From positions 1-57,229 of the forward strand of contig JAAPAO010000180.1 of NCBI GenBank assembly GCA_013115145.1: a stretch of 57,229 nt of DNA. The letters are read 5' to 3'. Position numbers and translations under genes: made by a program. Of this stretch, positions 3,700 through 55,097 are shown one piece after another (position 1 is the first letter of the stretch; each line of letters opens with the position of its first letter). Under the pieces are notes generated by a model. It saw only the letters and a list, made by a program, of their open reading frames with translations. It had not been told where the DNA came from and did not search any database. This DNA is from Perkinsus chesapeaki ATCC PRA-425 (lineage: Eukaryota > Protista > Perkinsozoa).

Positions 3700-4867
3700 G
3701 AAACCGTGAATTCTTACTCTCTGTTCTGGAGGGTGGATGATCTGGTGGGACTGTAGCCAAATGTACATCTTCAATATCGATTCGATGTTGAATGTAGCAG
3801 TTGAACTCTCTAAACAATACAAAGATGATTTTATAAGACAAGTTAACCAGGGAAATATTCACACTCATCATCAACCTGCTTGGACTTCATCAAATCCATC
3901 CACTACGAATAAGCACACAATTAACAAGTGTACCGCATCTGCAGTTGACTGCTAGAGTTGTGGCTTATACCCGAAACCTTCCCTCTAGACATTCCCTCGA
4001 TATAAACTATGTAATATGCGTTGGAAATGCTGCAAGACTGCAATTTGTTCCTTATAATGGTCCCACTCTAAGCAGTTGACTACACACATACGAGCGCAGT
4101 CCGCTCTGCCAAGTGGTCTACATTTAATATACCATAAATGAATATCACCATTCATGCATACTTACTTCCTCCGTCTCTCTTCTGTTTCTACTTTCCGAGA
4201 TCTCTCTGTCTGCTGTAGTTGATGAGACATATCCCATTGCCTGCAAATATTAATTACTCATAAGTTCAACTAGTAGAGTATCATCACTTTCTACGATCCA
4301 TTTCATGCTCCCAAGCTGCAAGGCATCTTTTATCCCACTCAAGTTGAGCTTCGTCAACCTTCTGTCGTCCTATAACAAGCACCATACCATCCGAGTTCGA
4401 TCCCTGCATCCGGTACATTACTTTTATTTTCACTTTCAATCAGAGCCTGTAAATGAGCAGCTGCAACAGACGAAGGATCCATTTGAGGTGTTATATAAAC
4501 TGATGGTTGAGTGGATTCTGAAAAAAGTGAAATACCCTCCCTGGGGTTCGAACCTTCGACCTCCTCCATTGCCCCTGCCTTTACCTTCTTTCATTGGTGT
4601 ATCCACATCAGTTATCCTTTTCGCAGTTTGCCTTCCCTGTGTATGCCTTACTTTATTCGGACTACATGGCATCGGAGCAGTTGCCGCGCTAGTGCTGCTG
4701 CTCCCACCAGATGATCCAAACATAATCGGTGGGATGTGGAACTCTCCACACGGTCCCATTCTGAAGAATCCGAGGTCGAAGCAAGTAAGATACAAAATAG
4801 GTTGGACTGACCCATAACGGTCAGTATCCCTGTGCCTAAATAAATAGTCTTGTTGCATCATTTGCAT
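3700..4867 (-). CDS. multi-exon hypothetical coiled-coil-rich protein
   Basis: Frame is continuous across short introns: ..TPMKE|ESTQPSV..ESENK|RRQKVDEAQLEWDKRCLAAWEHEMDRRK|QWDMSHQLQQTERSRK; ends approximate. Confidence 0.5.
4390..4417 (+). repeat. tRNA 3'-half-like element, antisense in intron 4370-4421
   Basis: ATCCGAGTTCGATCCCTGCATCCGGTACA. Confidence 0.7.
4533..4561 (-). repeat. tRNA 3'-half-like element, sense in intron
   Basis: rc GGTCGAAGGTTCGAACCCCAGGGAGGGTA followed by TTTCACTTTTTTCAG acceptor. Confidence 0.75.
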
Positions 4868-5399
4868 CCTCTTCTCCTTCTCTCTTTTACGAACTTCTCG
4901 CTTATATAACCTAAAATATAACCTTTATCATCAACACTCTTCTCTCCTCGTTCCCAACACCGTCACAGTCGATTATACTATTCAACCCTACCGACCCTCC
5001 CTCTCCCTGTAGCCCTAGTAAACTTTAGAGCCTCGTTTATGGGTTGTGATACCTCTGCCAATCCTTCTGACGTGCCTCTTTAGCCTTTTCAACTGCTAAT
5101 GTCATCGCAGAGGCATTCACAGACCGATCTACTATTGACAAGTCGATTACATCCACTGGTCGAGCAGTCATTATAAGGTATAATATTATTACCAGCAACG
5201 CATTAATTGACTACTTAACGATTGAACAACAATAATACTATGGTAACAACAGCAACATCATCATCATGTATAATACGCTAAGTTCTCAATACTGCTAATC
5301 GACCAAACAACTGCTTCAATGTTAATCGGGTTTATGCTCATGACTGCCCTAAATCAAAAGACCCTTCGAAAAAACTGCGAATAAACGGCAGTTACTTCG

Positions 5400-6290
5400 C
5401 TCTTATGATGCTGGTGATGGTGATGGGTCGTGCTCTTAGTCTGACCCACTTCGTATCTTGCGTGGTCAAGTTCAGGATTCTCTTCGGCTTTATTGGCTCC
5501 CTTACGAGGTTTCTCTTCCTCCGCGGTCTGAATAAGAATATAAGTATCTTCTAGTGCGTCGCGGAGCTACCAAGGATTCTCACCTTTTGAAATCGACTAT
5601 AAGGATCATGCTGCAATTCTGGTAACTTAGGCTGTTCCTTACTATCTACAAACGCGTACGTTTCAAAAACCTCCACAGTGCGCAAAGATACCTTCTTCCC
5701 GAGTGTGGTCCTTCTTCCAGATCGGTCGACCTTTAATCGACTTAAGATATTCCTTCGCTCGTTTGTGGACTGAACTTCGCCGATTACCTCTTCGACGATT
5801 ATACCACATCACAATAAGACTGAGTGGGACAGCAATATCATCTATGTTATATACCGAGTAGACATGCTTTCGGCAGGGGCGGCGGTGGTCAAATGAGACT
5901 GGTTTGATTTTTGTAAATCGAATAATTTACTATCATTCAGACAATAGGCACTTTAGTAGTGTCAATAGGGGTAATGAGAATTTTGCGCTGACGTCGGCAA
6001 GGTTTCATCCTCCTTTATAAATTTGCATTATTTTGGCAGATTTACTACCTCGATATTAAGCATCGGTACCAACTACATATTTGACGGTAATCGATATGAG
6101 AAAAGAGCGGTATGAAAAAACTCACCTCAAAGAGAAACTAATAAACCCTAATATTCCCCAAGTTATTATGATGATGCTCCAAGATGGTACCAAATGTAAG
6201 AAGAGTACCTGCGCACTATAAAGAATATCTTTGGAAGATACCCTTACGTGAGATGAACGGGATGAACCTGTCGCCGATCTAAGATACATT
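5400..6290 (-). CDS. hypothetical membrane protein exons
   Basis: Exon-like pieces including hydrophobic LVPSWSIIIITWGILGFISFSLR; may be the 5' part of the 3700-4867 gene. Confidence 0.25.
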
Positions 6291-6843: not shown

Positions 6844-9083
6844 ATGTCTATAGTTGATAATGCTAACCCATTAGTGTACTCAACTGACTCAGAGGTTGAA
6901 GATATACTATATGGGCTTACATTAGATGACATTGATAAATGGGATAATACTGATGAACAATTAGATGAACCAATGACATCAGCAGAGGTAATATGGAAGG
7001 GTTACAAATGATCGAACAAACTATATTATTAAACATAGTACAATATATTCGATATTATTATATACAAATTGATATATTATTATAATTAATTGGTCGAATT
7101 CCACTCAAGCAGGAGATAATAGGAAGCAACTTACGCATTAATCGACACTGCAGAACTTCACACTGAGTTGGATTCACTCATTCCAGGAAGTCTTGTTCGG
7201 TTTTGGCACCGACCCCCTTCTACTTGTTTGCTTTTACCATCTTATAAACCGCATGCAGTAGCCAGAAGGTGTGCCATTGCACCCATGAAAATTGATCAAT
7301 CGTTTATTATTATGAGTAAATTAGACAACGCATTTGGAATGACGTTGGAGAATTCGGGCTTTCATTTACATAATTTATTCCGGTAATTATATGATTACAG
7401 TTTAGAGACCAAAGTTCTCCAAGTATGATTGCGTTTTCCCCGTTCCCTCGGTGATATGCATATTGTCCACTTCCTGATTAATAATAAAGCTCCTCTCGAT
7501 AGATGTATTCAAAACACGTTTATTACTTATAAATGTTAGCAAGCACTGGAATGTAGCATGTAGAACCCGAGCAACAATTTTACAATATATATGTATATGA
7601 TTAATATATGTATATACTTGTGAACGCAATTAAGGGTGTCTCGAAACCAGACTGTTGAAAGCTTAAAGTCATCGACAATAATAATGCATTCCTTTTGCTG
7701 TAGTCGGCAATGCAGATGGAAGTTCACCCTAAAACCGCACCGAATTATAACATCGCTCCCAGTGACACGCTGAAGCTGATTATTAGTGGTGTTCTGCTCA
7801 ATCGCAGCTAATCCGAATCTCACCGAACCTTCTTTCAGCTGATAACTACTGTTCACGAGGTTTTGAAACAGTATTGAGCCCGGATTACCTTCAATAGGAC
7901 GATTGTTGATCTCACAAAATTCAATACTATTCCCCATTATGTTGGTGAAATACGACAGCTGACCCATATATCGGCAGTTTGCGGCTTTCTCTCTCCGCAT
8001 AGTCATTCAAGTGAGCATTATTAACCCATCAGGTCTTTGAGATCATTCGAGGCTTGCGTGATCCAGAGCATCCAACATTATCATTGGAGCAATTAAGGGT
8101 AGTTACTGCAGATCAGGTAGTAATAAAGTAGATATTCTTGCGCGCCGCGAAAAACAACAATAATGCAGCGCCTAATTTACCATCTTGCTCGAGTCATTAC
8201 GGTTTTCAAAATCTATGCTATTATAAGATGGGGGTTATTGATAATATTTTAGATATCAGTGACGAAAGGATCTGATGGAATAACGCGGATAGATGTCGAA
8301 TTCACTCCAACGGTAATATGGATATCGATTACATGATCGATTTGGTCCTCAATGTAGATACCAACGTGTTCAGTCGCCACTTTAATTGGCTTAACTATCC
8401 GAACGAAATTGCAAAAATGCATCTGTGCGGCAAATGGAGATATTAAGATAAACGTAAATATTAAAGAAGGTATTATGGGTCATGCGTCACGCGCCACAAA
8501 ATTATCGCGTTATTCGGCTCGTCTATCGAACTTTGGCAAGACTGGTGCTGAGCTCATTTTTGAATTCCCATTTGATGGACACAAGTCTCGTGGAAGCAGT
8601 TGTAGAATCGGTTGGCTTCCAAAGCCAGTTGGTTGCTAACCAAATGGATGGCTATCTTACCACATATGTTCGAAAGTGTTAAATTGTAGAGATTATCACG
8701 GATAGGCCGATGTTGATGGTATATTATAGAATTAGAGGGTGAAGCAGAGGTTGGGTGGAGACAGAGAAGCAATTATTCGGTCAGGCCATCTAGCTTCCCG
8801 CTATATGTTAATAAAATAGCCCATCCAGGGATGGAACCTGAGACCGGTTTGATTATTAACCATGATTTAGGCACACATGACCAGGAGCAACAAGTTAATA
8901 AACAATTAAATGATAAAGAAAGATGTCAAGCCGCAATAGAAAACCCCAATCTACAGAAGGTAATATATTGAAATCTGAATACCACTTGCATTTTCTCAAC
9001 GTGAAATTCAGGTTATTCGACAAGGCATATTTGACAGTGACCCTCCTTTACCTTCGGAACTGCAGCTTATTCCTGTGGGTTGA
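6844..9083 (+). CDS. CIAO2B: MIP18/FAM96B family cytosolic Fe-S assembly component (CIA2)
   Basis: MSIVDNANPLVY..|VFEIIRGLRDPEHPTLSLEQLRVV..|VEFTPT|IPTCSVATLIGLTIRTKL..|GTHDQEQQVNKQLNDKERCQAAIENPNLQK|VIRQ..*. Confidence 0.9.
8817..8845 (-). repeat. tRNA 3'-half-like element, antisense in MIP18 intron
   Basis: rc GGTCTCAGGTTCCATCCCTGGATGGGCTA + TTTT. Confidence 0.7.
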
Positions 9084-9156
9084 AAGGCGGAGCGAAGCTG
9101 TAACTTAAGCACATTTTCAACTTGTCTTCAAGGTGCTTGAGTTTTAACTGTTAAAT

Positions 9157-9185
9157 GCATTCACGGGGAATCGAACCTGCGACCT
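9157..9185 (-). repeat. tRNA 3'-half-like element downstream of MIP18 stop
   Basis: rc AGGTCGCAGGTTCGATTCCCCGTGAATGCA + TTT. Confidence 0.7.
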
Positions 9186-9602: not shown

Positions 9603-12600
9603 ATGAGCCTATCAATAGTTGATGAAGACTTTGATGTCTATGATAGTAATCCTTATCATCATCCGCTCGGAAAGAGACGTAAGTGGCGGACTCGTCGTTG
9701 TATTAGCCCACCGCTTATTTCGGAACTATCCCAGCATTTTGGCGCAAGGTGATTTACTGTGTAGTGATGATCGTGATGATGATGCTATATAGATATATTC
9801 TCAATAGTAATTCCGATACACAATGGTCAGTGGTAGGTTAGAATAAGTTGAACATGCTAGCACTTCGCTATACAAATAAGCACCTGGTTGTACACTTACG
9901 ATGTTGTGTATAACACATATCTTAAACAGTTTGCTAATATATATGTTTTTGACGCATCAATAAGTTGTGGAGAAATAGCGTTGAGGAAGAATGCTGGTAC
10001 ATCTGTTAAGTATCTTAACGAAGGTACTTCCCAATTTATAACCTATTTTGCTGTAATAGATATCAACTTACCTACACGTTCCTTTTACAGTAGCATTAGT
10101 GGATCGTTTTTTTTGGTTAGACCCTGATAGACGTGTCCGCAGACTCTCCAGTGTATCGCTGTCGAGGCTCATGACTTGCCCAATATCACAAGTCTTTGTT
10201 GTTACTCAAGATGTAAGGTGACGGGCATAGGGATTGAACCGGGGACTGCGGACCTTACAATATGCGGACCTTAACGTCTAAGCTATTCCGCCTTTGCTAG
10301 GAATTGGGGCACGGAGCGACAGCGACGGTTCGAAAAGTCATTCATAAAAGAACAGGAGAAGAGTGAGTTCCATCACCAATTCTGCGGCGCGTGCCACTTG
10401 GCTTGGTAATCTCAGGTTTGCGCTGAAGTCTCTACCGAAAAGGGACCTCACGCCTTTGCAGAAAAAGATATTATTGAACGAAGTTGAAATATTCCTGTCA
10501 GTGGATCATCCAAATATTTGCCGATTAGCTTACGTATTCGAAGCCCCTAGCATGGTGACCTTACCGGGAATCGAACCAGGGACCTCTCAATTACCAGATT
10601 TCGTAGGTACATTTAGTAATGGAACTATGCAGAGGTCCAGACTTACATACAATGATCCATCAAAGGTCGATGGTTCGATCCTCGGTTGTAGCATTTTATC
10701 AATAGGTTCAATTCTGGGCGTCATTTTAATGAGTTAGAGGTAGCCGACATCATAGCACAAGTGCTGTATGCTATCAATTACCTTCATACGTCTAACATAG
10801 TAAGGTCGTGGGTTCGATCCCTGGTGAAGGTATTATTAGGTTCATCGGGACATCAAACCTAGCCACTTTATTTTCACTTGTGGATGTCCCGTTGTCACCG
10901 GTAAGTTGGCGTCAATGCATATTGGATAAAAAATGATTGATAGTGTCTCTACTGGGAATCGAACCTGCGGTATTTGTCAGATGCCGCTCATGTTTATGAG
11001 TGCCCCGATCGTCGACTTAAACTATTTGACTTTGGCCTGGCCCGTCGAATTGGTTCCAGCAAATTTATTGGAGTAATGTCTTGACCAGGATTCGAACCTG
11101 AGTGTTTGGATTCCAAATCTTCAGGGCGGAACCTTGTCGTATATGGCACCTGAATGTTTGGAGGTTGAATGGGAGTCACGTAAACCTATACAAAGAAGAG
11201 TTAGTGTTTTTGGAGATGATGATCTGGATGAACAGTTAAGGAGTGGAAAAGATTCAGAGTAGGTTGGCCGCAGGCTGATGGGTATATTGACTTCAATGCT
11301 GAATTGAGAAGTTGATACTAAACTCAACATTTAATTTGATAACTCCTGCTTGAACGAAGGCATCCATAAACGACTTTAACGTGCTGCTGCATTCGGAAAC
11401 GAAGTAGCAATATTTATGTCATTGGATCTGTGTGGCTTCTTCCTCTTGCTCAGGTGTCTCATAATGCTGCCATTGTATGAGTTCTAAGACTCGGATTTCG
11501 TTATAACTATTCATCTTCGAGGTCCCCTCGAATGGGCTGTATGAGGCTGCTGTTTCCGCTTTAGTTACGAAAATAACATATTTCCGTAAATAAGGGTCAA
11601 ACATGTTTTTCACCACTGCGTGGTGCGATTTTACTGACTTAAAATAATTAAAATCGCACCACGCAGTTCTGAACCTTGGTCTTTAACTAATTCAGTGGAT
11701 GTGATAGTTGAATTTTTTGATGTCTTTGACAATACTGTTCGTATCTCTTTCATCTCGGGAACAGTTTTTTGTATCAGAGCTCCAACGGCAACTGAGTTGG
11801 ATGAAAAAGCAGCAAAATGCGACATATGGGGTGTTGGTGTTATTTGTTATCTCTTATTGACGGGCAAGATGCCATTTGAGTCGCCAAACGTCGGGGATGT
11901 TCTCAGAGAAATGAGGAAGATCGATCGAGGGAGAAGCCGTGCTAAGTCAGCAATATCGATCACGTGATCGATTTGGATATTGTCACAGCAGGTTTCTGAG
12001 CGATGATCGAGTTACTCATATATCAGAGCTCGCTCAGTCATTTCTGGGAGGTTGTCTGCAAGTCCGACCCTCCGAACGCTTCACCGCTCGACAAGCACTT
12101 GATCATCCATGGCTGACAGACATGCTTAAATCAGGTGAAAGAGAGGCAGCACAAAATGCAGGTTAGTGTATTCTATTGGCTAATCCTTTCTCTGTTGAAT
12201 TTATTTGAAGCTTATGAGGTAACAAGTATCGTCACGTATTCTCTTCGATAGCGACCAATTTTATAAGTATTAATAGAACGGCCTTCAGCTTTACAAGATA
12301 TAACTCTCCAGTGAACAGTTTTATATATAAATATTAAACGGATCCTTTAACGAGTATAGTTTAGCGAGTGGTTCGATAAACATAACCAAGAATACGGACA
12401 TAGTTCCAATACGGACTCATATCAATAAGTTGAAACTTATTGTTAGACTATACCTCAAAAGGTTACCGTCTTCAGTTTCGGAAGTTTTGCCGTGGAATGT
12501 GATTGAGAGTATGAGAAGGTATGCTGTAGCGAGTTCATTGAGGAAGGCCGCCTTAAACATGGTGGCATCGGGGCTTACATCGAGAGAAGTGCGTAATCGA

Positions 12601-13518
12601 AAGGTCTCCGGTTCGAATACCCCTAGCGACTTCCCCCACAGGTGCACGATCTCGAGAAGGCCTTCGTTAAGATAGATATAGACCACGATGGAGTAGTGCA
12701 GTTCTCTGAGTTACTCAGGGTTATCGCTCCAGCACATCGAGGAGACCTCCAGTCGGTCTTTCGTACATTCGCCAAAAGTCACAACAACTCAGGCGGGGGA
12801 GAGGTTCCAACCGAAGGGTCGCAGGTTCAATTCCAAGATGCGTTGTTTTAGGTACCAGAAAATGATCATGATTTTGAAGTTGAATATTCGCAGTTCTTGG
12901 CCGCTGCGGTTCACATGCGATCTGAAATGTTTCGAGATAAGATGAGAGAAATCTTTGGACGATTTGACATCGATGGAAATGGCACAATTTCCGAGGATGA
13001 ATTAAAGTAGGTGTCGCGCGCCACGAAATTATGAGATCATTGGCATTTTAGGATGATTCTCTCACACAGTCCGTCTACAAATAATGATGACCTCGACGCT
13101 GAAGTGGCCGAACTTTTAGCAAAGTTCGACAAGGATGGAAATGGTGTGATAGATTATGAGGAGTTCCTCACAGCTATGGATGACGATGAGGGAAGTCGAG
13201 ACAAGACCTGGATATGGGCACAACGCCACGAAATTCACTCTGTACGTTTACTCCTTTCCGCCTATTTTAGTTGTTGTTTAGGCACCACTGTTAGACAAGC
13301 ATAGCCCTTATGTTGGAACATTCGCCCATGCACCAGGTGGATCACCGTTATCGAGAGGATCATTATCCACTCTACCGAGGGACCTGGCATCATCATCACC
13401 ACGAATGAGTGCATACCACCAGAGCCCAGTGACCAGTGTTGTACGGGCAGTTCACCCACTTCCAAAGCCCATGCGATCTGCTGCGGTTTGTTGTGACCGA
13501 GGGTGTAACGTCATGTGA
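9603..13518 (+). CDS. CDPK: calcium-dependent protein kinase (kinase + EF-hands), many short introns
   Basis: ELGHGATATVRK, FALKSL, NEVEIFLSVDHPNI, VHRDIKP, DFGLA, GTLSYMAPE, CDIWGVGVI, RFTARQALDHPW, EF loops DIDHDGVVQFSE, DIDGNGTISEDE, DKDGNGVIDYEEF; start and last exon less certain. Confidence 0.92.
10219..10292 (-). pseudogene. degenerate full-length tRNA filling CDPK intron 10213-10300
   Basis: rc GGCGGAATAGCTTAGACGTTAAGGTCCGCATATTGTAAGGTCCGCAGTCCCCGGTTCAATCCCTATGCCCGTCA; TAGCT A-box start and GGTTCAATCC B-box, stems broken. Confidence 0.65.
10556..10590 (-). repeat. tRNA 3'-half-like element, antisense in CDPK intron 10555-10606
   Basis: rc AGAGGTCCCTGGTTCGATTCCCGGTAAGGTCA. Confidence 0.8.
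10665..10693 (+). repeat. tRNA 3'-half-like element forming most of 40-nt CDPK intron 10666-10705
   Basis: AG|GTCGATGGTTCGATCCTCGGTTGTAGCA TTTT..AG. Confidence 0.8.
10803..10832 (+). repeat. tRNA 3'-half-like element in 40-nt CDPK intron 10800-10839
   Basis: AGGTCGTGGGTTCGATCCCTGGTGAAGGTA. Confidence 0.8.
10944..10970 (-). repeat. tRNA 3'-half-like element, antisense in CDPK intron 10901-10980
   Basis: rc CCGCAGGTTCGATTCCCAGTAGAGACA. Confidence 0.7.
11077..11122 (-). repeat. tRNA 3'-half-like element, antisense in CDPK intron 11073-11124
   Basis: rc GATTTGGAATCCAAACACTCAGGTTCGAATCCTGGTCAAGACA. Confidence 0.7.
12591..12630 (+). repeat. tRNA 3'-half-like element in CDPK intron 12589-12641
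   Basis: CGTAATCGAAAGGTCTCCGGTTCGAATACCCCTAGCGAC. Confidence 0.7.
12805..12842 (+). repeat. tRNA 3'-half-like element in CDPK intron 12804-12851
   Basis: TTCCAACCGAAGGGTCGCAGGTTCAATTCCAAGATGCG. Confidence 0.7.
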
Positions 13519-16500: not shown

Positions 16501-18226
16501 ACGCTTGAACGTCCTGGCTGACCAGCATGATAATAGTTTCGTCAAAAGTGCTTTCAGTGGCTGGTTGAAGCTGATACGTGCTAGGCTATTGTATCATATT
16601 TGGGATTCCGAGCGATCACTGAGGATGACGCAACGTTGTTGGATGGCCTGGAATACACATCGCCGAGTGCGGTGCAGGTCACCGGATATGGGAGATTCTA
16701 CATTCCAAACCTCTCTGACAGATACTCTAATAATTTCCGTCTGCTTTGTGTCGCTAGACGCTTGACATATTTTTCGGCGTGGTATAAAGCTGCCAAATTG
16801 ACCCGGACTGCTCAGATGGCGGTATGCTAGACACTCGAATGCACCGAAAGCAATGTTTATCAGGAATATCTGCTCACTCCAGCTCGCATTGCTCCGGTCT
16901 TCAATGCATGGAGAGCCCATCATCGACTACAGCGGCCCAAACGGCTTCTGAGGTGTTTATTTAGGTGACTCAGACGCTAATTGGTCAACTTAAATTGACA
17001 CTTCCTTTCTTCTAGGCTCTGGCGTTGCTTTTCGCGAGCATCAACAGACCTCATTCACTGTGCTGGTCGAGTTGAAGCTATGCGCCAGAGGAACCTACTC
17101 CGGCGCGCACTCTGGCAATGGGCCAATCGAGTCGTCTCATTCGATCATCTCACTCGAACGCAAGCCGACGTCCTGGATATCTGCTCACTCTATATGAACA
17201 ATGCCAGACGTTTGACAGAGTCGATCACAGATAGGGTGCAAATTGATTGGTACCGTCTACTAAACACCATGAATAGTCACTCGATAGACGCTAACTCCGA
17301 TGGTCGGGAGGGCCTCAGAAGCTCAATGCATGAGTGGCAGCGGTAGAGAAGCATCGTTCCCCCAATTTTGACATCTTGTGCTGTTTCAGGCTATCAGGGA
17401 TGCTCCGTGAGGGAGAGCTTCCGCGATCTTATGAGCTGGAATGCCCATCATTATTTGGATCCTTGAGACGTACCGGAGAAGATCTGATTTCTCATGCTAC
17501 CGAAACTCTCTGACATTCTGGGGTTGCTTTGTTGTTCCCAGTGTCTGCAGCATCATTCTGGCATAACAAGGAAAAGCAGGTTGAGATACCTGCTGGGCGT
17601 AGCCTACATGATACATACTGGAACGATTGGAAATCTATTCACCCCGACCACACTCAAATGTGACAGCGCGCGCTCGAAAGTGTGGTAGTTTTACAGCAAA
17701 CTACTTGTCGGCAGATCCCGTTGCCATCCGATCTACTTCTATCCCTCATCTATTGGTCAGAAATTCTGACTCAGAGCTACAGTCGCGGGAGGGCCCGGTC
17801 CATGCCACGGTTGGTGTGGGCAACGGGTATCACGCTTCCGTGCCGCACCGAAGCGTGATACCCTTTGCCCACACCGCACATTTGAAACGGGTGTCTTTCA
17901 ATCGTGGGAAGGCGCTTGCAGCCGTACAGAAATCAGGAGCATACGTGTGTACGTTTTCTCTCGAGCTATCGATGCTAATTATTCAACCTTATTCCCACCT
18001 CCTCCCTAAACTCGCGTACTTCAATAAGAACTTAACGAGCTCCATGCTTGAGAGAGATATTACTGGACTTCCTATTAAACGCAACCTGCAGGAACCGAAA
18101 TTGATCAAAAGGAATATTCTCATTCCAGAGTCGTCTAAAACATTCCGGGCTCCCGGGGGATCATTAAAGCGATCAACCTCGGTACCGCAATGGTGTCGCG
18201 TTCTACAAGTACGGACAGCGACATAG
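13569..18226 (+). CDS. Sfi1-like centrin-binding repeat protein (multi-exon)
   Basis: Many basic helical repeats ending F/L-x2-W-K/R (HFKDWLK, LMEWKKR, LRAWKR, FTAWL, LDAWARW, FLKEWRRK, FSGWLK, FSAWYK, VFNAWRA, LWQWANR); boundaries approximate. Confidence 0.6.
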
Positions 18227-21205: not shown

Positions 21206-21651
21206 TTTCTCTCATGGCAGTTGTTACAGTTGGTGACTGCTCTCGGTAACTGCCTACTATTCAGTCGACAGTTCACAGTATCTCGCGGGGGACTCCTCCA
21301 CACTGGTATTGCGAGCCGCAGAAATGTCCACTTAATGCCTTCCTTCTCAATTTGTTTGTCCCGTGTCCTATGACAAATCTTGTCTTATCTAGGCTTCTCA
21401 AGCCGTGTTTGCCCTTGAGCTTAATCATGATGGTTATTCACTATGAGTACATAACGCAAGCCCGTAGTTATGAGCACAACTTGGTAAATGTTGCATGAAT
21501 TCATCACTTCTTACTTCCGAAGCTGCTGAATATTCGACCCTTCAAAGCAGATAACGCTAAAGTGGGACCACTAGCAGGTTTCGATCTCGGGACGATCTCT
21601 CTCATCCTAAACACCATAACATATTCTTGCAGTGCAAGCTCATGCTACTGC

Positions 21652-23800: not shown

Positions 23801-24222
23801 GTAATCCACCACTCGCTACCGTAGTCTCAGACTATATGCATGTGCTTGTACTGTGAACATCCTATACGTAACATAAGTTGAAGGATTTTATGAAATTCTG
23901 GAAGACTTTTGTCTCTCCCATGAGTAGTATGTTTGCTAATCCAGTCAGTAAAGCCCACACGAGGAAAACCAATAGATAGCCCAACCCCGGGCGGCGGCGG
24001 CGGCTCTCTCAGTATTACGATGATTTAATATCGTTCTCCGAGGCATTCGGGGATACCCCCAAAACATCATAAAGATTCTTGAACTCGGTGGAGGTCATGC
24101 ATCAATTATAAACTGAGGTATAATTTTGTGGCGCAGTGACGCGTTCCCATTATTAACAACTCGAAGAGTGTATTTTGTTTGTATTGCATTAATCCGAAAT
24201 GATATTAGTGAAGTGATGAGAC

Positions 24223-24434
24223 TTATTTGATGCTCTTCTTCTTTGACATCAAAGCTTTAGCAGCGGCCTTCTCAGCAGCCTTCTTTTCGCTCTGAAAAAT
24301 AAATTGTTAGCGGAGCGAAGCAAACTAAATCTTACCATTTGTTTCTTCATAGCGACGGTATCAGCATCCTCTTCCTTATGGGACTTGGCGGCCTTGAGTG
24401 GCTTAGCCTTTCCACCTTGAATATGACGACTCAT
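24223..24434 (-). CDS. TMA7: translation machinery-associated protein 7 (2 exons)
   Basis: MSRHIQGGKAKPLKAAKSHKEEDADTVAMKKQM|SEKKAAEKAAAKALMSKKKSIK*; GGK-KPLK signature. Confidence 0.75.
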
Positions 24435-24878: not shown

Positions 24879-24910
24879 AAGGTCTCGGGTTCGATCTCCA
24901 GATGGACTTA
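24879..24910 (+). repeat. tRNA 3'-half-like element just downstream of DBP2 stop
   Basis: AAGGTCTCGGGTTCGATCTCCAGATGGACTTA. Confidence 0.7.
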
Positions 24911-24953
24911 TTCTACCTCGTTAGCGGCAGTCATCGTTCGCAAAAAGAGGCGC

Positions 24954-27239
<2,286 letters not shown>

Positions 27240-41060: not shown

Positions 41061-41975
41061 TCAGACAGACGCATTCAATTGTGTATGGTCAAGAAGGCAG
41101 CTTTTGTACAGCATCCCATTCATAGTAATCTCTGTTCGCGCGCTAATACTAGAGGGCGCGCTAGCCTGGTAAAGGTTGCCCCGCGCGATATGTGACCGCC
41201 AAAGGGACAGCGTTACACAAGCTGCGGTAAGCAAACAAATGAACACCCACCGTGGGGCTCGAACCCACGACCACAAGGTTAAGAGCCTTGCGCTCTACCG
41301 ACTGAGCTAGACGGGCAATTGATGAATACAGGAGTCCCAAAACGCCTACAAAGCAGCGTCGTACTTTTCTTAGCCCCGAATACTCCGTTGACTCCGTCGC
41401 CAGAGTACATTCGATACAGTATGAGAAAGCCCGCCAGAGATGCCGTCCATCCAATCAAGTCAGCCATCATTTGCAGCATAGCCAACTGAATAGTGACATT
41501 AAGTCACGCGCCACAAAATCATCACTATATCATACTGAAGCCTCGGCCTCTGTGCTAGTGTAACACTTAACGCCCTTTTCCATTGCTTCATTTGCGACCA
41601 TCTCGCTGCTGCCCGGCAAAGCAATCGTTAATGCCTCACAACTGCTGCCTGTCTTATCTCCACCATCAACTATACGATAACGTATCATCGGTGGCATCGT
41701 ACCATCCCTACGAAGACTAATGCATGCTACCGTGGAAGGAGCCGCTGTCTTACATTGATGGAACAAACGCAATCTCATTGACCTTCGAGTCCTTCAGTTG
41801 TTTCCAAAAGCTAGAAAACGGTACCTGTAATAGGTTCTATGGCAATAAGCTCCACCAGATGCCACCTTTACTTCGGATACCTCGCTTCTCGTCGCTGGTG
41901 GTGGACTCGCTCTATGTCCTTCCAAACGGTTAACAAGCACAAAAGCCAACCCGAAACCCGCCATTGTACCGCTCA
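41061..41975 (-). CDS. hypothetical membrane protein
   Basis: Exons including [14 protein letters not shown] and [24 protein letters not shown]; hosts tRNA-Lys in a short intron. Confidence 0.4.
41244..41316 (-). tRNA. trnK-CTT: tRNA-Lys (CTT)
   Basis: rc GCCCGTCTAGCTCAGTCGGTAGAGCGCAAGGCTCTTAACCTTGTGGTCGTGGGTTCGAGCCCCACGGTGGGTG. Confidence 0.95.
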
Positions 41976-42384: not shown

Positions 42385-44254
42385 TTAACCCACAACCACA
42401 CCCACTGATCGGAAAAACAGCGGCAAGCAAATGCATATTATGAAGCATACAAGAAGCGAGTTCAATAGAGCAAAATCAGGGTATTGGTAATCGAGACGAC
42501 TTAACCCACCTGGTCGGAAACCTCCTGGCAAGAAGCTTGAGTTGAGCGTTGAAACTTGGAAGTAGTCACCACGTGTAAGGAAGAGCGTAGTTAACCATAG
42601 AAAGACACTCAACTTGACCAGAAAGTCACCAATCAACATAACCTAAAGAATCGACTCATCGAGCAACGGAATAATATGTAAAAAAGCGTCAGCCTGGGAT
42701 TCGAACTCGAGCCCTACACTAGAGACTTAGAGTATAATAACGGCAGCCCGATGCCATCCTTATTACCTTATACCGATAATGTGGAGACCAAAGGTTGGTC
42801 ATTACGACCAGTATGGGGTAGGAGAGGAAGTAAAGGATTCCAACAGCGCAGAACTTGTTGAGAAAATACTTCAATTTAGGACCTACAATGTGCAACTGAG
42901 CATAATGCAACAACGATACACCTCCGGTGGGGCTCGAACCCTCGACCATGGCGCTCTACCGAACTGAGCTACGCAGGCTTATATACCACCAAACGGAAAC
43001 TCCCATTACTACTAGCCTGTTTTCCTGTATTGTTGATGGCCCAGAGAAACCATGCCAGAAGACACAATCTCATAGCGCATAACAAATACCCCGTTAAACC
43101 TGAACACGACCAAATGAAAAGACATCGATACAAATAGAAAGTAGACGACACAAGAAGGACAAAGCGCCGTTTGTGACCGTCACCTGCAGACTAATGAAAT
43201 TGCAGCATCGATAGATGGAGTTAACCGTGAATTTATTACCTTCATTTTCATAGAACTTATAAGATGCATCATCCTTTATTTTACCAAATCCAACAATTAA
43301 TATATGTATTATCTAAACAACCAAGTTATATACAAGCAATTGCGAACTTTCATGTGAGTGTAATCCTCCAACGCTAATAAGAAGCATCGGTGATATTTCA
43401 AGTAGGTCGGGATGAACTCGCATACGGAGTTCGGCATCGCCAATATTACCGCAACCATAAACACTATTGGAATAACAATATCCAAGTCGCCCAAATCTCT
43501 CTGTAACAGTGTGTAGCCCGACGCGATTAGAATGAGCAGTGAAGTAACTGCAGAACAGCTCAGTCAGTATGTATTCGTACTTCTTATATTAACAACCCAG
43601 GTTCGATTCCTCCCTCCTCTATATTACCCACAACTTCATCCACTACACTTAACATCTGCGATATCACATCCAAAGCCTTCAAACCATACCCATTCGACGC
43701 ATACTTCCAAATATGAAGAACTTCAAATAGAATTACCAACGCCTGAAGCACTCATGAAAGAGAAATACCGTTCCTTAAATTATTCAGAGTATTAGCCGAT
43801 CGCCACATCCTTGTTGAACGTGCAAGGGAAACCAACGATAAGGAGATGTTATCGAACGAGCAGCACTGCTATTTGTAGTGCAGCCCGAGACAGTAATTAA
43901 GTCAGGTGTAATATTCTCCAATTACCTGTATAGCAATTATACATGCTAAAGTTATCACGACAGGGTGAAGAGATTCCGCTGACTTAACGAATCTTACACA
44001 AGCCTTACAGAAGTAGTACATAAATGCCCCTGATAAAATATATGCCCAGCTAGAGGTATCAGAAATAACTACTTACCATATATAATAACTTCGAGTAGGA
44101 AAATCCACTGCACCCCACTCCGTTCCACCGAAAATTCACTGCCATCTGGCTGGTGCGCCACAAACTCGAACCTGATTGACTTTCTGTTAAAAACCCCTAC
44201 GTAGGTCTCACCTAAGCCTCGCCGGTGAATTACCAAACTTTGGCGGATTGTCAC
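42385..44254 (-). CDS. GPR180/TMEM145-like multi-pass membrane protein
   Basis: Several TM exons (GDLDIVIPIVFMVAVIL, RLCLLAWFLWAINNT, LKYFLNKFCAVGILYFLSYPILVV, FLWLTTLFLTRGDYFQVSTLNSSFLPGG); boundaries approximate. Confidence 0.65.
42686..42714 (-). repeat. tRNA 3'-half-like element in intron
   Basis: rc GGGCTCGAGTTCGAATCCCAGGCTGACGC + TTTTTT. Confidence 0.7.
42919..42978 (-). pseudogene. 60-nt tRNA-like element lacking the anticodon arm, intronic
   Basis: rc GCCTGCGTAGCTCAGTTCGGTAGAGCGCCATGGTCGAGGGTTCGAGCCCCACCGGAGGTG. Confidence 0.8.
43596..43621 (+). repeat. tRNA T-arm/B-box element, antisense in intron
   Basis: CCCAGGTTCGATTCCTCCCTCCTCTA. Confidence 0.6.
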
Positions 44255-48339: not shown

Positions 48340-51300
48340 ATGGCGGTGTTCCTCGAGCCCTCCATTTTTGAGAAAGTGAGGAGAACTACGTATATTCTGT
48401 CTGTGAGATTCGAGCCGGGGACCTTTCGATTGTTAGGGGCACTGGTTTTGGTCGAAGTAGTGCAGCAGTTATCTATTGCGGACCAGACCCGAGCATCGGA
48501 CAATTGTTCCGGAAGTTTGGCAAAAAAGATTCATTAACGAGAATAAAGGCGTTGGAGGAATTGCGTAGTAGGATTGAAAGCAGTGATGGTACGGGCGTGG
48601 GTTCGAACCCAGGATGAGACACTTTTTATTTCAGAAATAAACTCGAGTGGACTAGCAAGCATATTGGAACCATTTGCGGCACATTATAAGAGGTCGGCAT
48701 TGTTGGACCCCGGTAGTATCTTAGGTTGTTGCGTGCAACATACTGCTTCGGTCAGATTGGCGTTGTCGAGCAGCGATGCACGGCATAGTAGCGTTGTTGG
48801 TGCAGAAGCTTAAAAAGGAAGCTGTCGCATATCTTCCAGAAATACTACCTTCACTTTACTTGGCGTCATTGTAAGCTCGTGAGACATTAAGTATCGATTC
48901 GACCGTCTTGCAACACATCCGAGTATTACCACAAATTAGCAAATTTCCGGTTTGTTGGAAACTTTCACCGGAAGTAAATAAAGGCATTGATGATTGCTAT
49001 TCTGGCGGTGGACTGAACGGGCTTTCAACTCAACCTTCGAAATATCTTTTCAGATATGACACGCACTATGAAGTTTGCCGTTCAGCAAGCGCTGCTTTAT
49101 CGTTGATGTTCCCTCACGAAAATAAACGGAGAATGGCAATCTTTGACAACTTCCGAGACCCTGTCCGGAAGCAGGTACGTACAATAATTTCGTGGCGCGT
49201 GAAATATCGTCTGGGCAGATATGCTGGTTGTTATCAGAAGAATGCACTCCACAAGAGCTGGATGATATATTTGGTGCGGGAGCATCCAAGGTTGACGCAC
49301 GAGATGAAAGCGAGGAAAGATACGATCGCGCTTTATGTGCAGCTCTCACTGCGGTACCGAGGTAAATACATTCGCGCATCATCGTTGATAATCTTGCCCG
49401 TTTCGTCACATTAATTCCATTCGACACCGAAACCGAATGAAGGAGAGCCAGTACGTATCTAATCACCCTTCAAGGTCGAGGTGCCCTGTTTGAGGCTTCG
49501 TTAATTATAAACGATTACTTGACACTCTCCTTCGCTTGTTAATATCTATTCACAGTGTGCAGCACTACAGTGTTAAAATCAACGCATTTGGCACGCTTTC
49601 GAATTTCCGTTGCCTTCACAGCAGCAAGAAGGCATAAAACGGTTCTTGCAAGTACTATATGTTCATTAAGAGCGCTGAAAGTACAATATTTTTATTAATG
49701 TGGTCCAAATCATAGTATCGGTCATCCATTTCGTGTTTTAGATTCTCATTGGCCTATAATTCCAAGACAGACGTCGACCCAGCAATAGCGTCGTTGGACC
49801 TCACGAAGTTCTCATTGCCACCTTATCGCTCCGTGGTAATTATATATCAGATAATCGATCAACTGATCGATTTGGGGAGCGAGATTTCGATAATACCTTC
49901 TGTCATAGGTCCGTACAGCTGCTTTGGCACGGTGTTTGGTACCCCTTTTCAAGGATGGTATATTGAGGTCGAAGATACGGAATGAGCTCGATGCGCAAAA
50001 GATACTCAACTTGCTTTCCGCCACTATTGGCGATCTTACAGTCGGGAGGTCCACTGCAGATTTCATACAGCTTCTGGCTGAAGACAGGTAGTTCACTAAA
50101 ATGCCCGCGCCCTGGCGATCGATTTTGTATTTTTTCTTTAGTGATTTTTGCTCGGAACTGGAAGCAAATCGTAAATTACGCCAAGCAGTGTGCTCGACAG
50201 TTTCAGGTGGAAGTGACACTGTTAAAGCGATGCCGAGCATTATTGCTGGAGTGAATAAATCTGAGGTGGGTTGTAGGGAATCTTGGACTTCTGTCGTTCA
50301 GTGGTATGGTGGATTGTGGATAAGCGAGGAGGCAGAGATAGGCGAAAGTCGAACCGCGTCGAATATCAAATGAGGATCAGATGCCATCACAAAACCTCTC
50401 TTAAAGGCCTCTCTCTCGAACGCCCCATGTGTCGCCAAAATATTAGAAGAGCGCCCTGGAGTCTCCCTGAAGTTCAGTCTGATACACATTCTTCTATCAT
50501 TTCTGGAAATCCATAGCGTGAGAGATAATACCGAGGAAGCCTATGGCAACAGCTGTCGAGGTGGACACAAGTGAAATCACGGGGACTCGCACTTGGGTGA
50601 CCATCGAACCGTTTACCAATTCCACGACTTCGATAATGGTTTACCATCCCTTATATCAATAAGGGATGTGTTTCAGGTGTTACTAAGATGGAGTGTAGAA
50701 GAATTGATGCCGAGCATTCTGAAGGCATTGGGAGCACCACAGCCAGCGCCACCACCAAGAGTTATATATCAAGTATGAGATTACCGCGCGCCAAGAAATA
50801 TTGATGTCTCGTAACAGGTTTTCGGTGATTGCTTGGGTGTGATGGCGAGCAGTGAGGAATTCGTGGCGAGTTACAGCAATGAGATCGCTGAGCTTTTTAT
50901 GGAGTTGGCGCGGCATTATGTTTATTCAGGTAAGTGTACCATCCGGGGTTCGAACCTGCGACTTTACATTTCAAAACCCATCTGATTCGACTTCATATGA
51001 ATCGATGAATCCAAAGACACGCGCTTGTGTTAATTTGAGCGGCTGAATCTTTCAATGATGTATATGTGACGGCCGACGACCGAAAATAAGCTATAAAATC
51101 GAGGCGACTCGTTGAGCTCGACCGTTAAAATTTGCAGAAATGATAAAGTGCTGCCCCAATGAAAAATAAAATTTGCGAGCATACACCAATTCTAAGGAGA
51201 GCATTGATCGTGTAAGGGCGTTCAAAGGATTGAGGAACAAGTTCAACTTATATCCCAGCTAACACATTCCTAAGTGCGAATCAACGTGATGAAGGCCCTT

Positions 51301-54153
51301 CGCGCGTTAGACTCGGAATGACCTTCACACTGGGACGAATAATTTTGATGGAAACCCCTCGAAGTTTTACTTGACTCATTTGACGTAGCGACCAATTGTC
51401 CCGACTCCTATATCATCTATTTTCAGGCATCGATGATGCTTTACCACCACCAAGTTCAACATCGAAGATCCCACAAGTTTTAGATCGGTCCCTCAGCAAG
51501 TTGCCATCGAAGTTAGCTGATGCTATCCTTGAGGCGGCCGAAAAGGAGTTCCACGTGTATCCACGATTCCCGCAAATACTGGTGCGATGGCCGCGCTCAC
51601 AATGTGTTGTGAAGGGCCTTTACGAGGAGAATTTGCGGCAAGAGCGCTGGGAGGAGGTAAAAGCGCTCGCCCAGATGATCGATTCGGTGAAAGTTGTGGA
51701 GGATTTGGTTGTAGAGGAGAATCTGCCAGAGGGAATGTGGGGAGTAGTGTATGAGAATTTGGAGGAGATTGAAGTCGAAAAACGTGAAGAAGTCTACATA
51801 CTAATCTCAGATGTATTGAAGAGTCGTGGAGACTTTGAACGCTTGATTGATATACGGGATAGAACCAAGTGGCCAGAAGTCACTACCGCTTACCTTGATG
51901 ATGCCGACACTGACGTTTTGGTAGAAGCAGTCGGGATATGTGCCCCTTGTCAAACACACTACAGCAACGGTTTGGTGTCCTTCGACTCGTGGTGTGAAAA
52001 GATAGCGCCTACTGGCCAATGCGAGAATTTGTTCACAACGGAGGAGTTTTGCACCAACTGGGGAGGAGGGGATATTGAAACTGCGCGCCGCGTTCGGGCG
52101 CAGGTTCTATCCCGGGCTGTGTCGATTTGCCTTTCCGAAAATGAAGAGGAACATTCATTCTGGCTCGATGTCATCGACCAAATTGCTACAAACGATCCTG
52201 ACTCTTGCAACATCAGTAGACCGACCTGTGTGAAGGCTCTCATCGAAGATGGATTATTCTCCTCGCTTTGTAAGGTTTCTGATTGTTGGGCTCCGATGGC
52301 AAGCCTCTTTGGCGTATCTTGGCAAGACTTAGCCAACTCCTCATCCTTGAACCAGCTTCACTGCATTGGACCGATTAAAGCGCGAACTCTCTTGGAACAG
52401 GTCGGCCCTGTACATGATTTCGCGCGCCACGAAATTATACAGGCCGTCTTGGAAGTCACGCAGGCTCTTGGTGGGAGAATGAATAGCGGAATTGAAGACT
52501 TGATCGAAGGAGCTGAAAGCTATGAACAGCAAGAAGATATCTTCGCCGTTTTGGTTGAGCTTGTCGGGAAAGATCCTTCGGCTGATTGGAGGAGCTTGGT
52601 GGCACTCTTATTGGGGAAATTACGCAACATAGGAGTTGATGGTCTCGCTGAAAGCCTCATTGCAAACCCGCGGTTACTACAGATCGTTTTGAAAAAGAGA
52701 AGGGGTGAGATAACTGAGGAAACTCGGAAAGAAATACTAACTTACTGGTCGCCTAAGTTGTGTTCACGAACGCGAAGTACGGCAACTGACGCGGCGAGGG
52801 TGGTGGAAGCCCTGGGCGAAGGTGCTGAGATTGACGCGGACGTAGTGGAGAGGTTCGCCCATCTTCAAGAGAACGATGATCAGGGCGGAGTTGCATGCAT
52901 ATGGAAAATGGAAGGGATGGCGGAAAGTTGCGAAAAGATAAGTCAATTGAGTGTTGTGGATGATGACACCGTTGAACTGTTCATGAGATGCGGAAAGGAA
53001 GGTTTGGACCTTCTGGAGAACGCAGTGCTGAGAATGCCATGCGATGCCCAAATACCAGAGATTGCACTTGACGGACTTGAGACGGCTGCATCATCAGACT
53101 GGGTTATCAGGCTTTTGTCTGGTCGCCAGGGATGCTCCGAAGAACTAGTGAAATCTGGATGCCGACGCCTTGAGTCGTTCGAGGCTGGCGACGTGGCTAT
53201 CAATAATAAATCTAGGAAGCTGCTTACTGATGGGTGTCTTGAACTCTGGTTATGGGCACTGCACAAGGACCCAGATTTTCTGTTTGAATCTGATACACGA
53301 AGTGTTTTTCAAGAAGTTATATCGGAGATTAGCGCGCATCCGATGACCGCTCCTATCAACGGCGAACTTGGACGGAAACTGCTTAAATTGGATTTGGTTG
53401 ATGACGATCTGCTGCTTGGATGGAGAACGCTCACCATGTTATGTATGCGAGGATTCGAACCTTTAGACGAGAACAGTTCTCGTTGGTTGCTTCCGCAAGT
53501 TAAATCTGTTGTTGGTCCAATACTTATTGAATGGGAAGCCAATGAATGCAAAGAAGTGTCCGAGGTTGAATCGCAGTATACACCATCTATTAGGGAGCTA
53601 CTAGCAACAAAGGAAGCCGCCGATGGCCTTAGAACTGAACTTAGAATCACATTGCCACAAGATTGGCCATTGGCTAAAGCTCATGTGAAGGTACCACCGA
53701 GGTTTGAGATAGATAGGGAATTCTATGGTCATTCGTTTACTACGTTTCCGCCTAAATAAAAATGTCATGAACTTCCATGTAGAATGATTCGGTGGAGCTT
53801 ATCAGGATAGATGATTACCGTCACAATGTTGTTTGAGTACACTTACTGTTTAGGTATCCCCGATACCAGGCGTGCCGTCATCTCGTAACAATAAGCTAGC
53901 CCTTGCTGTTCTCCGTGAGATGACCAAGAGTGGCATGAGTTCGACGCTCAAGATTTGGTCAGGGAATGTTGATAGAATATTTGACGGTGTTGAGCCATGT
54001 GTTATCTGTTATAGTATTGTTAGCATAGATAGCAACAGTCTGCCTAATAAACAGTGTAGAACTTGTAAGAATAAGTTCCACAGTGATTGCATATATCGGT
54101 GGTTTCGGACCAGTCAAAAGACAACTTGCCCTCTCTGTCAGAGTCTCTTTTAA
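48340..54153 (+). CDS. LTN1: E3 ubiquitin ligase Listerin
   Basis: N-terminal DPSIGQLFRKFGKKDSLTRIKALEEL, long helical body, RWD-like LRITLPQDWPL, C-terminal IWSGNVDRIFDGVEPCVICYSIV..KQCRTCKNKFHSDCIYRWFRTSQKTTCPLCQSLF RING. Confidence 0.92.
48396..48430 (-). repeat. tRNA 3'-half-like element, antisense in LTN1 intron 48390-48436
   Basis: rc AATCGAAAGGTCCCCGGCTCGAATCTCACAGACAGA. Confidence 0.7.
48593..48621 (+). repeat. tRNA 3'-half-like element in LTN1 intron 48589-48634
   Basis: GGGCGTGGGTTCGAACCCAGGATGAGACA + CTTTTT. Confidence 0.8.
50572..50602 (-). repeat. degenerate tRNA 3'-half-like element, antisense at an LTN1 donor site
   Basis: rc GGTCACCCAAGTGCGAGTCCCCGTGATTTCA (one mismatch in the T-loop). 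Confidence 0.5.
50936..50965 (-). repeat. tRNA 3'-half-like element, antisense in LTN1 intron
   Basis: rc AAAGTCGCAGGTTCGAACCCCGGATGGTACA. Confidence 0.8.
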
Positions 54154-54569
54154 TAGTCTCTTCTACCATTTGTATCCACTGTTCATGCGCAATTTGGTGT
54201 TATTGTTATAAATTGTGCAGAGTGATATTTGGGGATCAGAAGGGCTTCTACAGGGCTGGTGTACTTGGGTTTTTACTCTTTGAAAAACGATTGAGTAGGC
54301 TTTTGTAAGAGCGCTTTCTGGGGGAGTACAGAGCCTCTACAGAGAAATGTTCTTTTTTGACTATCCTTCTCGACAAAGCGAGTGAGGTGGTGACTTTTCG
54401 GTAGCGGTGGCAACTCAAAGTGGTCCTACAACCACTCGTATCAGCGAGGTGTCCTATTTAGGGAATGTCAGCTTATCTGTAGTGGTTGAAAGCTTCGCGA
54501 ACTTATTCGAATCTTAAGGGAAAGCTAGTCTCCTCCATTATAACCGCTTTTTGAATTTTAGAGCTGGAA

Positions 54570-55097
54570 GCGCAGTAGAGATGCAACATAGTGGCGGCTA
54601 TTCAAGGCTCCTTCCTTGAGGAGCACCTCGAAGAAGGTGATCGGTGCGTGCTCTCAGTTCATTTTAGTGATATTAAAGGTTTCAAGAAATATTTGCGGGT
54701 TCGATTCCATGCAGCTGCAGTTCTACTTCAATTGCCGTACGGAGACCCAAAGAAGGGTCTGAGCAGGGAGTAAGCTCGGTCCGAATGAGTTTATGCCGAA
54801 AAGTTCAAAAAGCCGATTAGAAAGCACCCATACATGCTACAAGCATCTTCCACTCCTCCGTTGGGGAGCTTTGCTTAGGGCCTATATGTTCCGCCCATCT
54901 TGGAGTCCTTTCTAAGAGAGCCTCTACTTTATCACACTCAGTGTTATCAGGAAGCTGTTCACAGAATCTTCGGACACCATACGGCTCATCAGCAAGTTTG
55001 CCTTGCTCAAAAAGCTATACGAGAATTTAAATTGTCCAAGTCGACCCTGCAAAATGGTCAGCTGCGTCGCGCTGTACAACTGGCATTTTGGTGCTAA
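54570..55097 (+). CDS. hypothetical protein exons
   Basis: Exon-like pieces (AAIQGSFLEEHLEE; ESFLREPLLYHTQCYQEAVHRIF..); not recognised. Confidence 0.25.
54695..54719 (+). repeat. tRNA T-arm/B-box element in candidate 42-nt intron 54679-54720
   Basis: GCGGGTTCGATTCCATGCAGCTGCA. Confidence 0.55.

Follow-up and report, generated by a model that had tools for sequence, protein, structure and literature searches.

tRNA-gene tails in short introns of Perkinsus chesapeaki, with a B-box that may be under selection

The stretch of DNA analyzed here (the window) is the complete 57-kb contig JAAPAO010000180.1 of assembly GCA_013115145.1 from Perkinsus chesapeaki, a shellfish parasite of a lineage near the dinoflagellates and apicomplexans. 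Its annotated genes include a CDPK, a DnaJ/TPR protein, a DEAD-box helicase, a fused model with two D2HGDH parts, and listerin (Table 1). Scattered among them are short elements that resemble the 3' end of tRNA genes and contain the B-box, the promoter motif of RNA polymerase III (Pol III) genes. A first-pass annotation had described about 30 such elements, roughly one per 2 kb and in both orientations, nearly all in short introns of unrelated genes, and had read them as the product of either a tRNA-driven origin of introns or a system of intronic binding sites for the Pol III factor TFIIIC.

The observation of the first-pass annotation was confirmed: in the whole window, GGTTCGANNCC has 22 matches against 0.17 expected, and no shuffle gave more than 2. 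Only four of the matches are tRNA genes, and one more is a tRNA-like gene without an anticodon arm. An nhmmer profile of tRNA positions 44-73 plus the tail, built from 24 anchored copies and applied with a cut-off of at least 10 bits, recovered 29 non-tRNA elements between 4386 and 50964, about one per 2 kb and on both strands. The best score in 10 shuffles of the window was 9.5 bits, and two bare B-box matches (54698 and 53451, the latter within the long listerin exon) fell under this chance ceiling.

The aligned copies read aAGGTC-N3-GGTTCGAT(C/T)CC(C/T)NG, followed by seven variable bases ending in Y, an A and a T-rich run. These are, in order, the AGGTC of the variable loop, the B-box/T-loop, ten bases, Y-A and a T-rich tail, and both landmarks and spacing match tRNA positions 44-73 followed by the gene trailer; the gap between GGTC and GG is three bases and not four to five as first stated. 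No conservation was found upstream of tRNA position 43 in the aligned copies. A-box/D-arm motifs are at chance level in the window (10 matches versus 7.4 expected), and therefore it holds no orphan 5' halves. The elements are only ca. 30 to 35 nt long and have no single consensus beyond the tRNA-invariant positions; the closest pairs within the window share 18 to 26 identical bases and then diverge. ARAGORN and Rfam call four tRNAs and the arm-less tRNA, and none of the 29 elements. Relaxed settings were discarded: the halves are too short for Rfam, where the sole matches were to a plastid 5'UTR model resembling an antisense tRNA, and the relaxed ARAGORN output was mostly noise.

Introns were assigned on protein conservation (motifs, gaps in homologues and exons conserved across species), not on RNA reads; the stretch was traced to a single DNA run and to no listed RNA run. 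On these grounds, 15 of the 29 elements lie in introns fixed by homology or exon conservation in the CDPK, DEAD helicase, DnaJ, D2HGDH and listerin genes. Another nine are compatible with short GT-AG introns predicted from reading-frame continuity, and five (8817, 9156, 10219, 24880 and 36235) have no intron assigned. An exonic position could be demonstrated for none of the 29 elements. The intronless stretches 51429-53756 and 18426-19529 contain no element of at least 10 bits, as first reported.

Removal of six GT-AG introns from the CDPK gene yields an uninterrupted kinase domain with the GxGxxG, HRD, DFG and APE motifs, and two further elements of this gene (12602 and 12816) flank EF-hand exons. 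The exon after intron 10666-10705 (10706-10735) starts with GGTTCAATTCTGGGCGTCATTTTAAT, which looks like a weak element but encodes the kinase residues RFNSGRHFNE. In the DEAD helicase, intron 25331-25377 interrupts motif VI at HRIG/RTGR and intron 25117-25220 comes after the residues REAEQA; in the DnaJ gene, intron 23525-23575 interrupts the J domain past HPD, at AYA/VLRDPDKR. The D2HGDH element coincides precisely with a gap in the proteins of P. marinus and of distant homologues. Mapping of the annotated listerin protein gave 11 introns, three of them with elements, and tblastx against P. olseni confirmed the exons. Elements are present in 9 of the roughly 20 introns mapped in parts of three genes. 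Three other approaches to gene structure were set aside. Models rebuilt by dynamic programming (range and product length) differed from the annotated one for listerin and were kept only as a hint, local scoring of GT-AG pairs by codon usage was too noisy and even when refined gave no more than weak support, and a longest-open-frame cover test was uninformative, since some frame reads through most short introns.

The position of the elements within the introns follows a simple geometry. Sense and antisense copies are about equally numerous, and the tRNA-like 3' end usually lies 0 to 16 nt from a splice site. Sense copies have the acceptor AG 6 to 16 nt past the base equivalent to A73, so the tRNA trailer provides both the polypyrimidine tract and the AG; the donor lies 0 to 25 nt before AGGTC and is once the GT of AG/GTC itself. 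With donors in or just before AGGTC, introns of 40, 40, 46, 47, 51 and 53 nt contain nothing but the element. Antisense copies take their donor from the trailer, whose reverse complement reads GTAAGT, GTAATG or GTAATA, or from the reverse complement of A73-C74. Only element 10944, in the 3' part of an 80-nt intron, departs from this arrangement. Intron ends slide by at most 4 nt, hence there are no target-site duplications, and at the 3' end a short T-rich run extends to the splice site, instead of the poly-A or LINE-like tail found in short interspersed elements (SINEs); both absences had been noted before. A possible CCA end is real (10553-10555), but it straddles the exon/intron junction ATG/GTGACC and is probably a coincidence.

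Table 1 Features of the window. Element coordinates correspond to tRNA positions 44-73; gene ranges are those of the annotation converted to the window. Sense and antisense refer to the host gene.
Feature	Positions	Strand	Context	Basis
Element	4386-4415	+	antisense, predicted minus-strand intron 4370-4421 (52 nt), donor GTAATG adjoining 3' end	reading frame only
Element	4533-4562	-	sense, predicted intron 4518-4584 (67 nt)	reading frame
Element with T-run	8817-8846	-	no host gene or intron assigned	
Element	9156-9185	-	no host gene or intron assigned	
Element	10219-10248	-	antisense to CDPK; D-arm-like sequence upstream, possibly near-full-length pseudo-tRNA; intron not fixed	
Element	10556-10585	-	antisense, CDPK intron 10555-10606 (52 nt); donor GT is complement of A73-C74	kinase continuity
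Element	10664-10693	+	sense, CDPK intron 10666-10705 (40 nt), begins at GT of variable-loop AG/GTC	kinase continuity
Element	10803-10832	+	sense, CDPK intron 10800-10839 (40 nt), element plus TTATTAG, directly before VHRDIKP codons	
Element	10944-10973	-	antisense, 3' part of CDPK intron 10901-10980 (80 nt), away from donor	
Element	11077-11106	-	antisense, CDPK intron 11073-11124 (52 nt), donor GTAATG	kinase continuity
Element	12602-12631	+	sense, CDPK intron 12589-12641 (53 nt); next exon encodes EF-hand (DIDHDG)	
Element	12816-12845	+	sense, CDPK intron of ca. 96 nt; end 12851 (TTTTAG) or 12858, scored about equally	
Element	23540-23569	-	sense, DnaJ-gene intron 23525-23575 (51 nt)	J-domain split
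Element	24880-24909	+	antisense, near 3' end of DEAD-helicase gene; no intron assigned	
Element	25185-25214	+	antisense, 5' end of DEAD-helicase intron 25117-25220 (104 nt), donor GTAATA	
Element	25341-25370	-	sense, DEAD-helicase intron 25331-25377 (47 nt)	motif VI split
Element with T-run	27927-27956	-	antisense, predicted plus-strand intron 27913-27970 (58 nt)	
Element	28282-28311	+	sense, predicted intron from 28275	
Element	28663-28692	-	antisense, predicted intron 28650-28715 (66 nt)	
Element	31323-31352	-	sense, predicted intron 31316-31363 (48 nt)	
Element, tRNA-like sequence upstream	33067-33096	+	antisense, predicted intron 32974-33099	relaxed ARAGORN 33022-33096 (upstream sequence)
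Element	34872-34901	-	sense, 3' end of intron before exon starting 34857, truncated D2HGDH copy A	
Weak element (11.6 bits)	36235-36264	-	between the two D2HGDH copies, outside known introns	
Element	37156-37185	-	sense, D2HGDH copy B intron 37140-37190 (51 nt)	
Element	42686-42715	-	sense, predicted intron 42643-42766, GPR180-like part	
Element	43592-43621	+	antisense, predicted intron 43497-43627, donor GTAATA	
Element, weak B-box GGCTCGAATCT	48395-48424	-	antisense, listerin intron 48390-48436 (47 nt)	
Element	48592-48621	+	sense, listerin intron 48589-48634 (46 nt), entirely element	
Element	50935-50964	-	antisense, 5' end of listerin intron 50930-51426, donor GTAAGT	
CDPK introns	10363-10415, 10555-10606, 10666-10705, 10800-10839, 10901-10980, 11073-11124	+	5 of 6 carry an element	
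tRNA-Gln(CTG) gene	3579-3650	+		
tRNA-Ile(TAT) gene, complete	22288-22362	+	antisense, 5' end of predicted DnaJ-gene intron 22233-22368; reversed trailer gives donor GTATTA	
tRNA-Gln(CTG) gene	29405-29476	+		
tRNA-Lys(CTT) gene, complete	41243-41317	-	sense, within annotated minus-strand gene range; T-rich tail and CAG 22 nt past end	
tRNA-like gene without anticodon arm	42919-42978	-	sense, predicted intron of ca. 118 nt; possible intermediate form	
AATTTCGTGGCGCGYG sites	8495, 10386, 13022, 22756, 25991, 28573, 37300, 41512, 49194, 50792, 52428			
CDPK gene	9603-13518	+		annotation
622-aa gene			on contig	annotation
367-aa single-exon gene	18426-19529			open reading frame
DnaJ/TPR gene	21504-24098	-		annotation
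DEAD-box helicase gene	24223-27239	-		annotation
2258-aa fused model	ends 44652	-	GPR180-like, AAA and two D2HGDH parts	annotation
Listerin, FOL47_002800	48340-53759	+	protein matched by longest open frame	annotation

Whole tRNA genes show the same arrangement. Predicted introns harbor the tRNA-Ile, tRNA-Lys and arm-less tRNA genes in the geometry of the elements, the last two genes with a T-rich tail and a CAG 22 to 25 nt downstream. Together with the near-full-length pseudo-tRNAs at 10219 and 33067 and the bare tails, they would form a trimming series. It may have started with abundant tRNA genes, some of them whole within introns, that came to sit tight against a splice site; once such a gene died, deletion would trim the intron to a minimal size of ca. 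40 to 50 nt and spare the third nearest to the splice site. We consider the descent of the elements from tRNA genes and their location in introns to be well supported, and the series appears to fit relics beside a fixed splice site better than a mobile half-tRNA.

The first-pass annotation had also stated that the copies differ from each other as tRNA isoacceptors would, a claim that did not withstand analysis of RNA structure. The mean number of T-stem pairs was 2.97 of 5, compared with 3.14 of 5 after permuting strands between elements, and a scan of all 4-bp registers across the elements detected no covariation. Upstream partners for the acceptor 5' strand were not enriched (5.70 versus 5.64 permuted), and element introns fold no better than shuffles, with z-scores of about -0.9 to +1.7. 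The elements keep sequence, not structure, and the intron RNA is not folded. It follows from these values, and from half of the copies being antisense, that a structured tRNA-like RNA, in which tRNA-processing enzymes would cleave the excised introns to small RNAs, is largely refuted. In its favor are elements 10803 and 28282, for which perfect 7-bp complements to the acceptor-like strand exist 25 nt before G53 (10780-10786 and 28261-28267). The first complement falls in an exon coding for YLH, and over all elements such complements are not above chance.

For comparison with P. olseni, contig L002 does not extend beyond the 3' part of listerin, and locus L004 is syntenic for listerin only. Each of the 11 P. 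chesapeaki listerin introns has a one-to-one counterpart in P. olseni. The orthologue of intron 48589-48634 (L004, 11574-11626) contains a recognizable, decayed element, and no element was found in the P. olseni introns at the other two listerin element positions, including 50930-51426. In P. marinus, the orthologue of D2HGDH copy B intron 37140-37190 (L005, 857-906) holds a 20-bit element, and the corresponding intron carries an element in both P. chesapeaki paralogues, copies A and B. Thus, at the positions of all four testable element introns (three in listerin and one in D2HGDH), P. olseni or P. marinus has an intron as well, and in two cases the relative's intron holds an element too. The element in P. 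marinus and in both D2HGDH paralogues, and the decayed copy in P. olseni, indicate that some elements predate the splits between Perkinsus species.

Since all comparable introns are at shared positions, intron gain is not demonstrated, and the tRNA-driven origin of introns proposed at first lacks this support. The same result bears on an active introner-like element, a short mobile tRNA-derived unit with splice signals in both directions that makes an intron wherever it lands. Such a unit would account for entire introns of 40 to 53 nt made of the element, for the coincidence of element end and intron end in both orientations and in unrelated genes, for subfamilies with 18 to 26 identical bases in common, for a second recurrent family of intron motifs (see below) and for elements being far more numerous in P. 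chesapeaki than in the sampled P. olseni locus. We nevertheless regard it as quite unlikely, given the shared intron positions (11 of 11 in listerin with P. olseni, and D2HGDH with P. marinus) and the lack of target-site duplications, terminal inverted repeats and tails and, as far as the window goes, of near-identical full-length copies. Besides, the species table in the supplement of Gozashti et al. 2022 (PMC9860276) includes three Perkinsus species, none of them among the introner-bearing species listed there.

The B-box of the elements changes less than its flanks. By manual count, 15 of the 29 match GGTTCRANNCC perfectly, 12 deviate at one position and two at two positions. The 15:12 ratio of zero to one mismatch, which is insensitive to the detection cut-off, corresponds to a divergence of ca. 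8% per site, a value reached while stem complementarity is already at chance. We aligned by hand three independent pairs of orthologous or paralogous introns (P. marinus versus copy A, copy A versus copy B, and P. chesapeaki versus P. olseni listerin) and found identity at 28 of 33 B-box sites (11 positions) but only 28 of 54 flanking sites (18 positions), a difference with a Fisher p of 0.002 in a small sample of three contrasts.

These values have to be set against a purely neutral origin, in which the elements are decaying tRNA genes or 5'-truncated tRNA retro-copies with no host function, and the conservation of the B-box reflects detection bias and young copies. The density of tRNA genes here (4 to 5 in 57 kb), their near absence, like that of the elements, from the P. 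olseni locus, and the absence of two of the three listerin elements from the P. olseni introns at the same positions are all consistent with it, as are TCGA-rich introns that suggest many more decayed copies and a detection that leans mostly on B-box columns. However, the mismatch ratio is free of the cut-off effect, a divergence of ca. 8% does not fit stems at chance level, copies older than the species split have kept their B-boxes intact, in P. marinus as well as in the two P. chesapeaki paralogues, and B-box and flank differ in identity. For these reasons, we judge neutral relics to be an unlikely explanation.

The TCGA core deserves separate mention. In the P. chesapeaki listerin introns (48390-51426), TCGA is 3.6 times more frequent than expected, with 13.7 per kb versus 5.8 in the exons, and the excess includes element-free introns; it may represent decayed elements. 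No TCGA enrichment was found in the P. olseni listerin orthologue (L004). A signal acting on RNA could also be envisaged, in which the half-palindromic UUCGAA/AUCGAA core is read in the pre-mRNA either way, as an enhancer or an odd branch region, and only looks like a B-box. The palindromic TTCGAA gives UCGA in both orientations, the core lies 22 to 31 nt upstream of the acceptor in sense copies, and the TCGA excess extends to introns without elements. Even so, this is very improbable: AGGTC, G52-G53, C61-C62 and Y72-A73 are conserved too, at tRNA spacing, none of which a short motif needs, P. olseni splices its introns without TCGA enrichment, and UCGA does not fit the branch consensus yUnAy.

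A second motif, AATTTCGTGGCGCGYG, occurs 11 times in the window versus 0.9 expected. Five of these sites are in mapped or predicted introns (CDPK 10363-10415, DEAD helicase 25969-26013, D2HGDH copy B near 37300, and listerin 49175-49218 and 50773-50817), one is antisense within the long listerin exon, and the core is also present in the orthologous P. marinus D2HGDH intron (L005, 722-772). The motif resembles a further conserved module of introns or a site bound by a factor.

Taking the evidence together, our preferred reading is that the tails of tRNA genes have been kept as the bodies of introns and that selection maintains the B-box, probably as a site for TFIIIC; we give it an even chance of being correct. 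The B-box changes far less than neighboring positions, which argues for selection on it as double-stranded DNA, and the retained motif works in either orientation and not via RNA structure, as would be expected for the target of a DNA-binding factor. The factor known to read the B-box is TFIIIC, for which B-box-only sites have been described in yeasts and humans, and its docking would be the likeliest cause of maintenance. The TFIIIC-site system of the first-pass annotation is thus favored by preferential B-box retention and orientation independence, and disfavored by the near absence of elements from a 27-kb P. olseni locus.

Several observations weigh against this reading. A 27-kb P. olseni locus with dozens of introns contains no element of at least 10 bits and no tRNA gene, in contrast to the 29 elements and 4 to 5 tRNA genes of the P. 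chesapeaki window; therefore, any function of the elements is dispensable in that locus, or their abundance is specific to a lineage. The constraint test is based on only four comparisons of introns, all of them hand-aligned, and the contrast between stem and B-box becomes less telling if the source was not a canonical tRNA. Trimming by deletion is deduced from a series of forms and was not observed, and docking of TFIIIC is proposed by analogy with known B-box-only sites. A density of one per 2 kb is far above that of known extra TFIIIC (ETC) sites, which together with the scarcity in P. olseni calls for caution. The elements track introns without regular spacing, none being present between 13 and 23 kb, and there is no explanation for subfamilies that have the 5' part and T-loop in common and differ in the seven bases before A73.

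If the preferred reading holds, a sizeable share of the short introns of a eukaryote would be made of tRNA-gene tails, a concrete source of intron sequence other than transposons, and the trailer of a tRNA gene can act as a splice signal in either orientation. Selection on the B-box would moreover imply an unusually dense system of TFIIIC-type sites within genes. More tentatively, P. chesapeaki, and P. marinus to a lesser degree, might maintain intronic B-boxes by the tens of thousands, taken over from dead tRNA genes that resided in introns, as a system of landing sites for TFIIIC throughout the genome. Such a system would couple a Pol III factor to the gene bodies of RNA polymerase II, for instance through polymerase pausing at ultra-short introns or chromatin organization. 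P. marinus is culturable and transfectable, and thus a TFIIIC-type system is amenable to experiment.

Some features of the surrounding genes are also worth recording. The annotated 2258-aa gene is a fusion of unrelated parts. Within it, D2HGDH copy A (34394-35429) is truncated and lacks the middle of the enzyme, in contrast to the complete copy B (36861-39036). Over a stretch of 175 nt, the two copies are 99.4% identical, which suggests recent gene conversion. An exon at 53854-54153, past the annotated stop of listerin (53759), has 93% protein identity to the last (RING) exon of P. olseni listerin, and the model FOL47_002800 is therefore probably truncated. We found no relatives of the 367-aa open reading frame, and hence no syntenic locus could be obtained from it. 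In the region of the 622-aa gene, 17812-17876 gives a sub-threshold Rfam match to mir-5918 (41.8 bits versus a gathering score of 69) that is probably spurious.

Full-text literature searches turned up no account of tRNA-like sequence within introns, either in Perkinsus or in other organisms. For this genus, Zhang et al. 2011 (PMC3101222) reported only intron frequency and length, and Kojima and Jurka 2013 (PMC3706591) described Dada transposons that target the many tRNA genes of P. marinus. Among known systems, the elements recall the ETC sites of yeast and human and the chromosome-organizing clamp (COC) sites of Schizosaccharomyces pombe, being isolated B-boxes without an A-box or tRNA fold, free in orientation and conserved beyond their flanks. 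Unlike these, they are candidate sites within introns, occur about once per 2 kb, and carry AGGTC, Y72-A73 and a trailer that reveal their descent from tRNA genes. With tRNA-derived SINEs they share dispersal, tRNA relatedness and a Pol III promoter box kept while the cloverleaf decays, but they have no A-box head, body, tail, target-site duplications or single consensus and measure only ca. 30 to 35 nt. As in the introners of Micromonas, Aureococcus, dinoflagellates and fungi, similar introns appear in unrelated genes and in both orientations, with splice sites at the element ends, although the elements are much shorter, have no target-site duplications or terminal repeats, and in the tested copies are at shared intron positions. 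Finally, antisense Alu elements, which provide polypyrimidine tracts and splice sites, likewise offer one T-rich or A-rich terminus of a Pol III-derived repeat as a splice signal in one orientation; in P. chesapeaki, however, the element can be the whole intron, both orientations give a signal, and the product is an intron body instead of a new exon.

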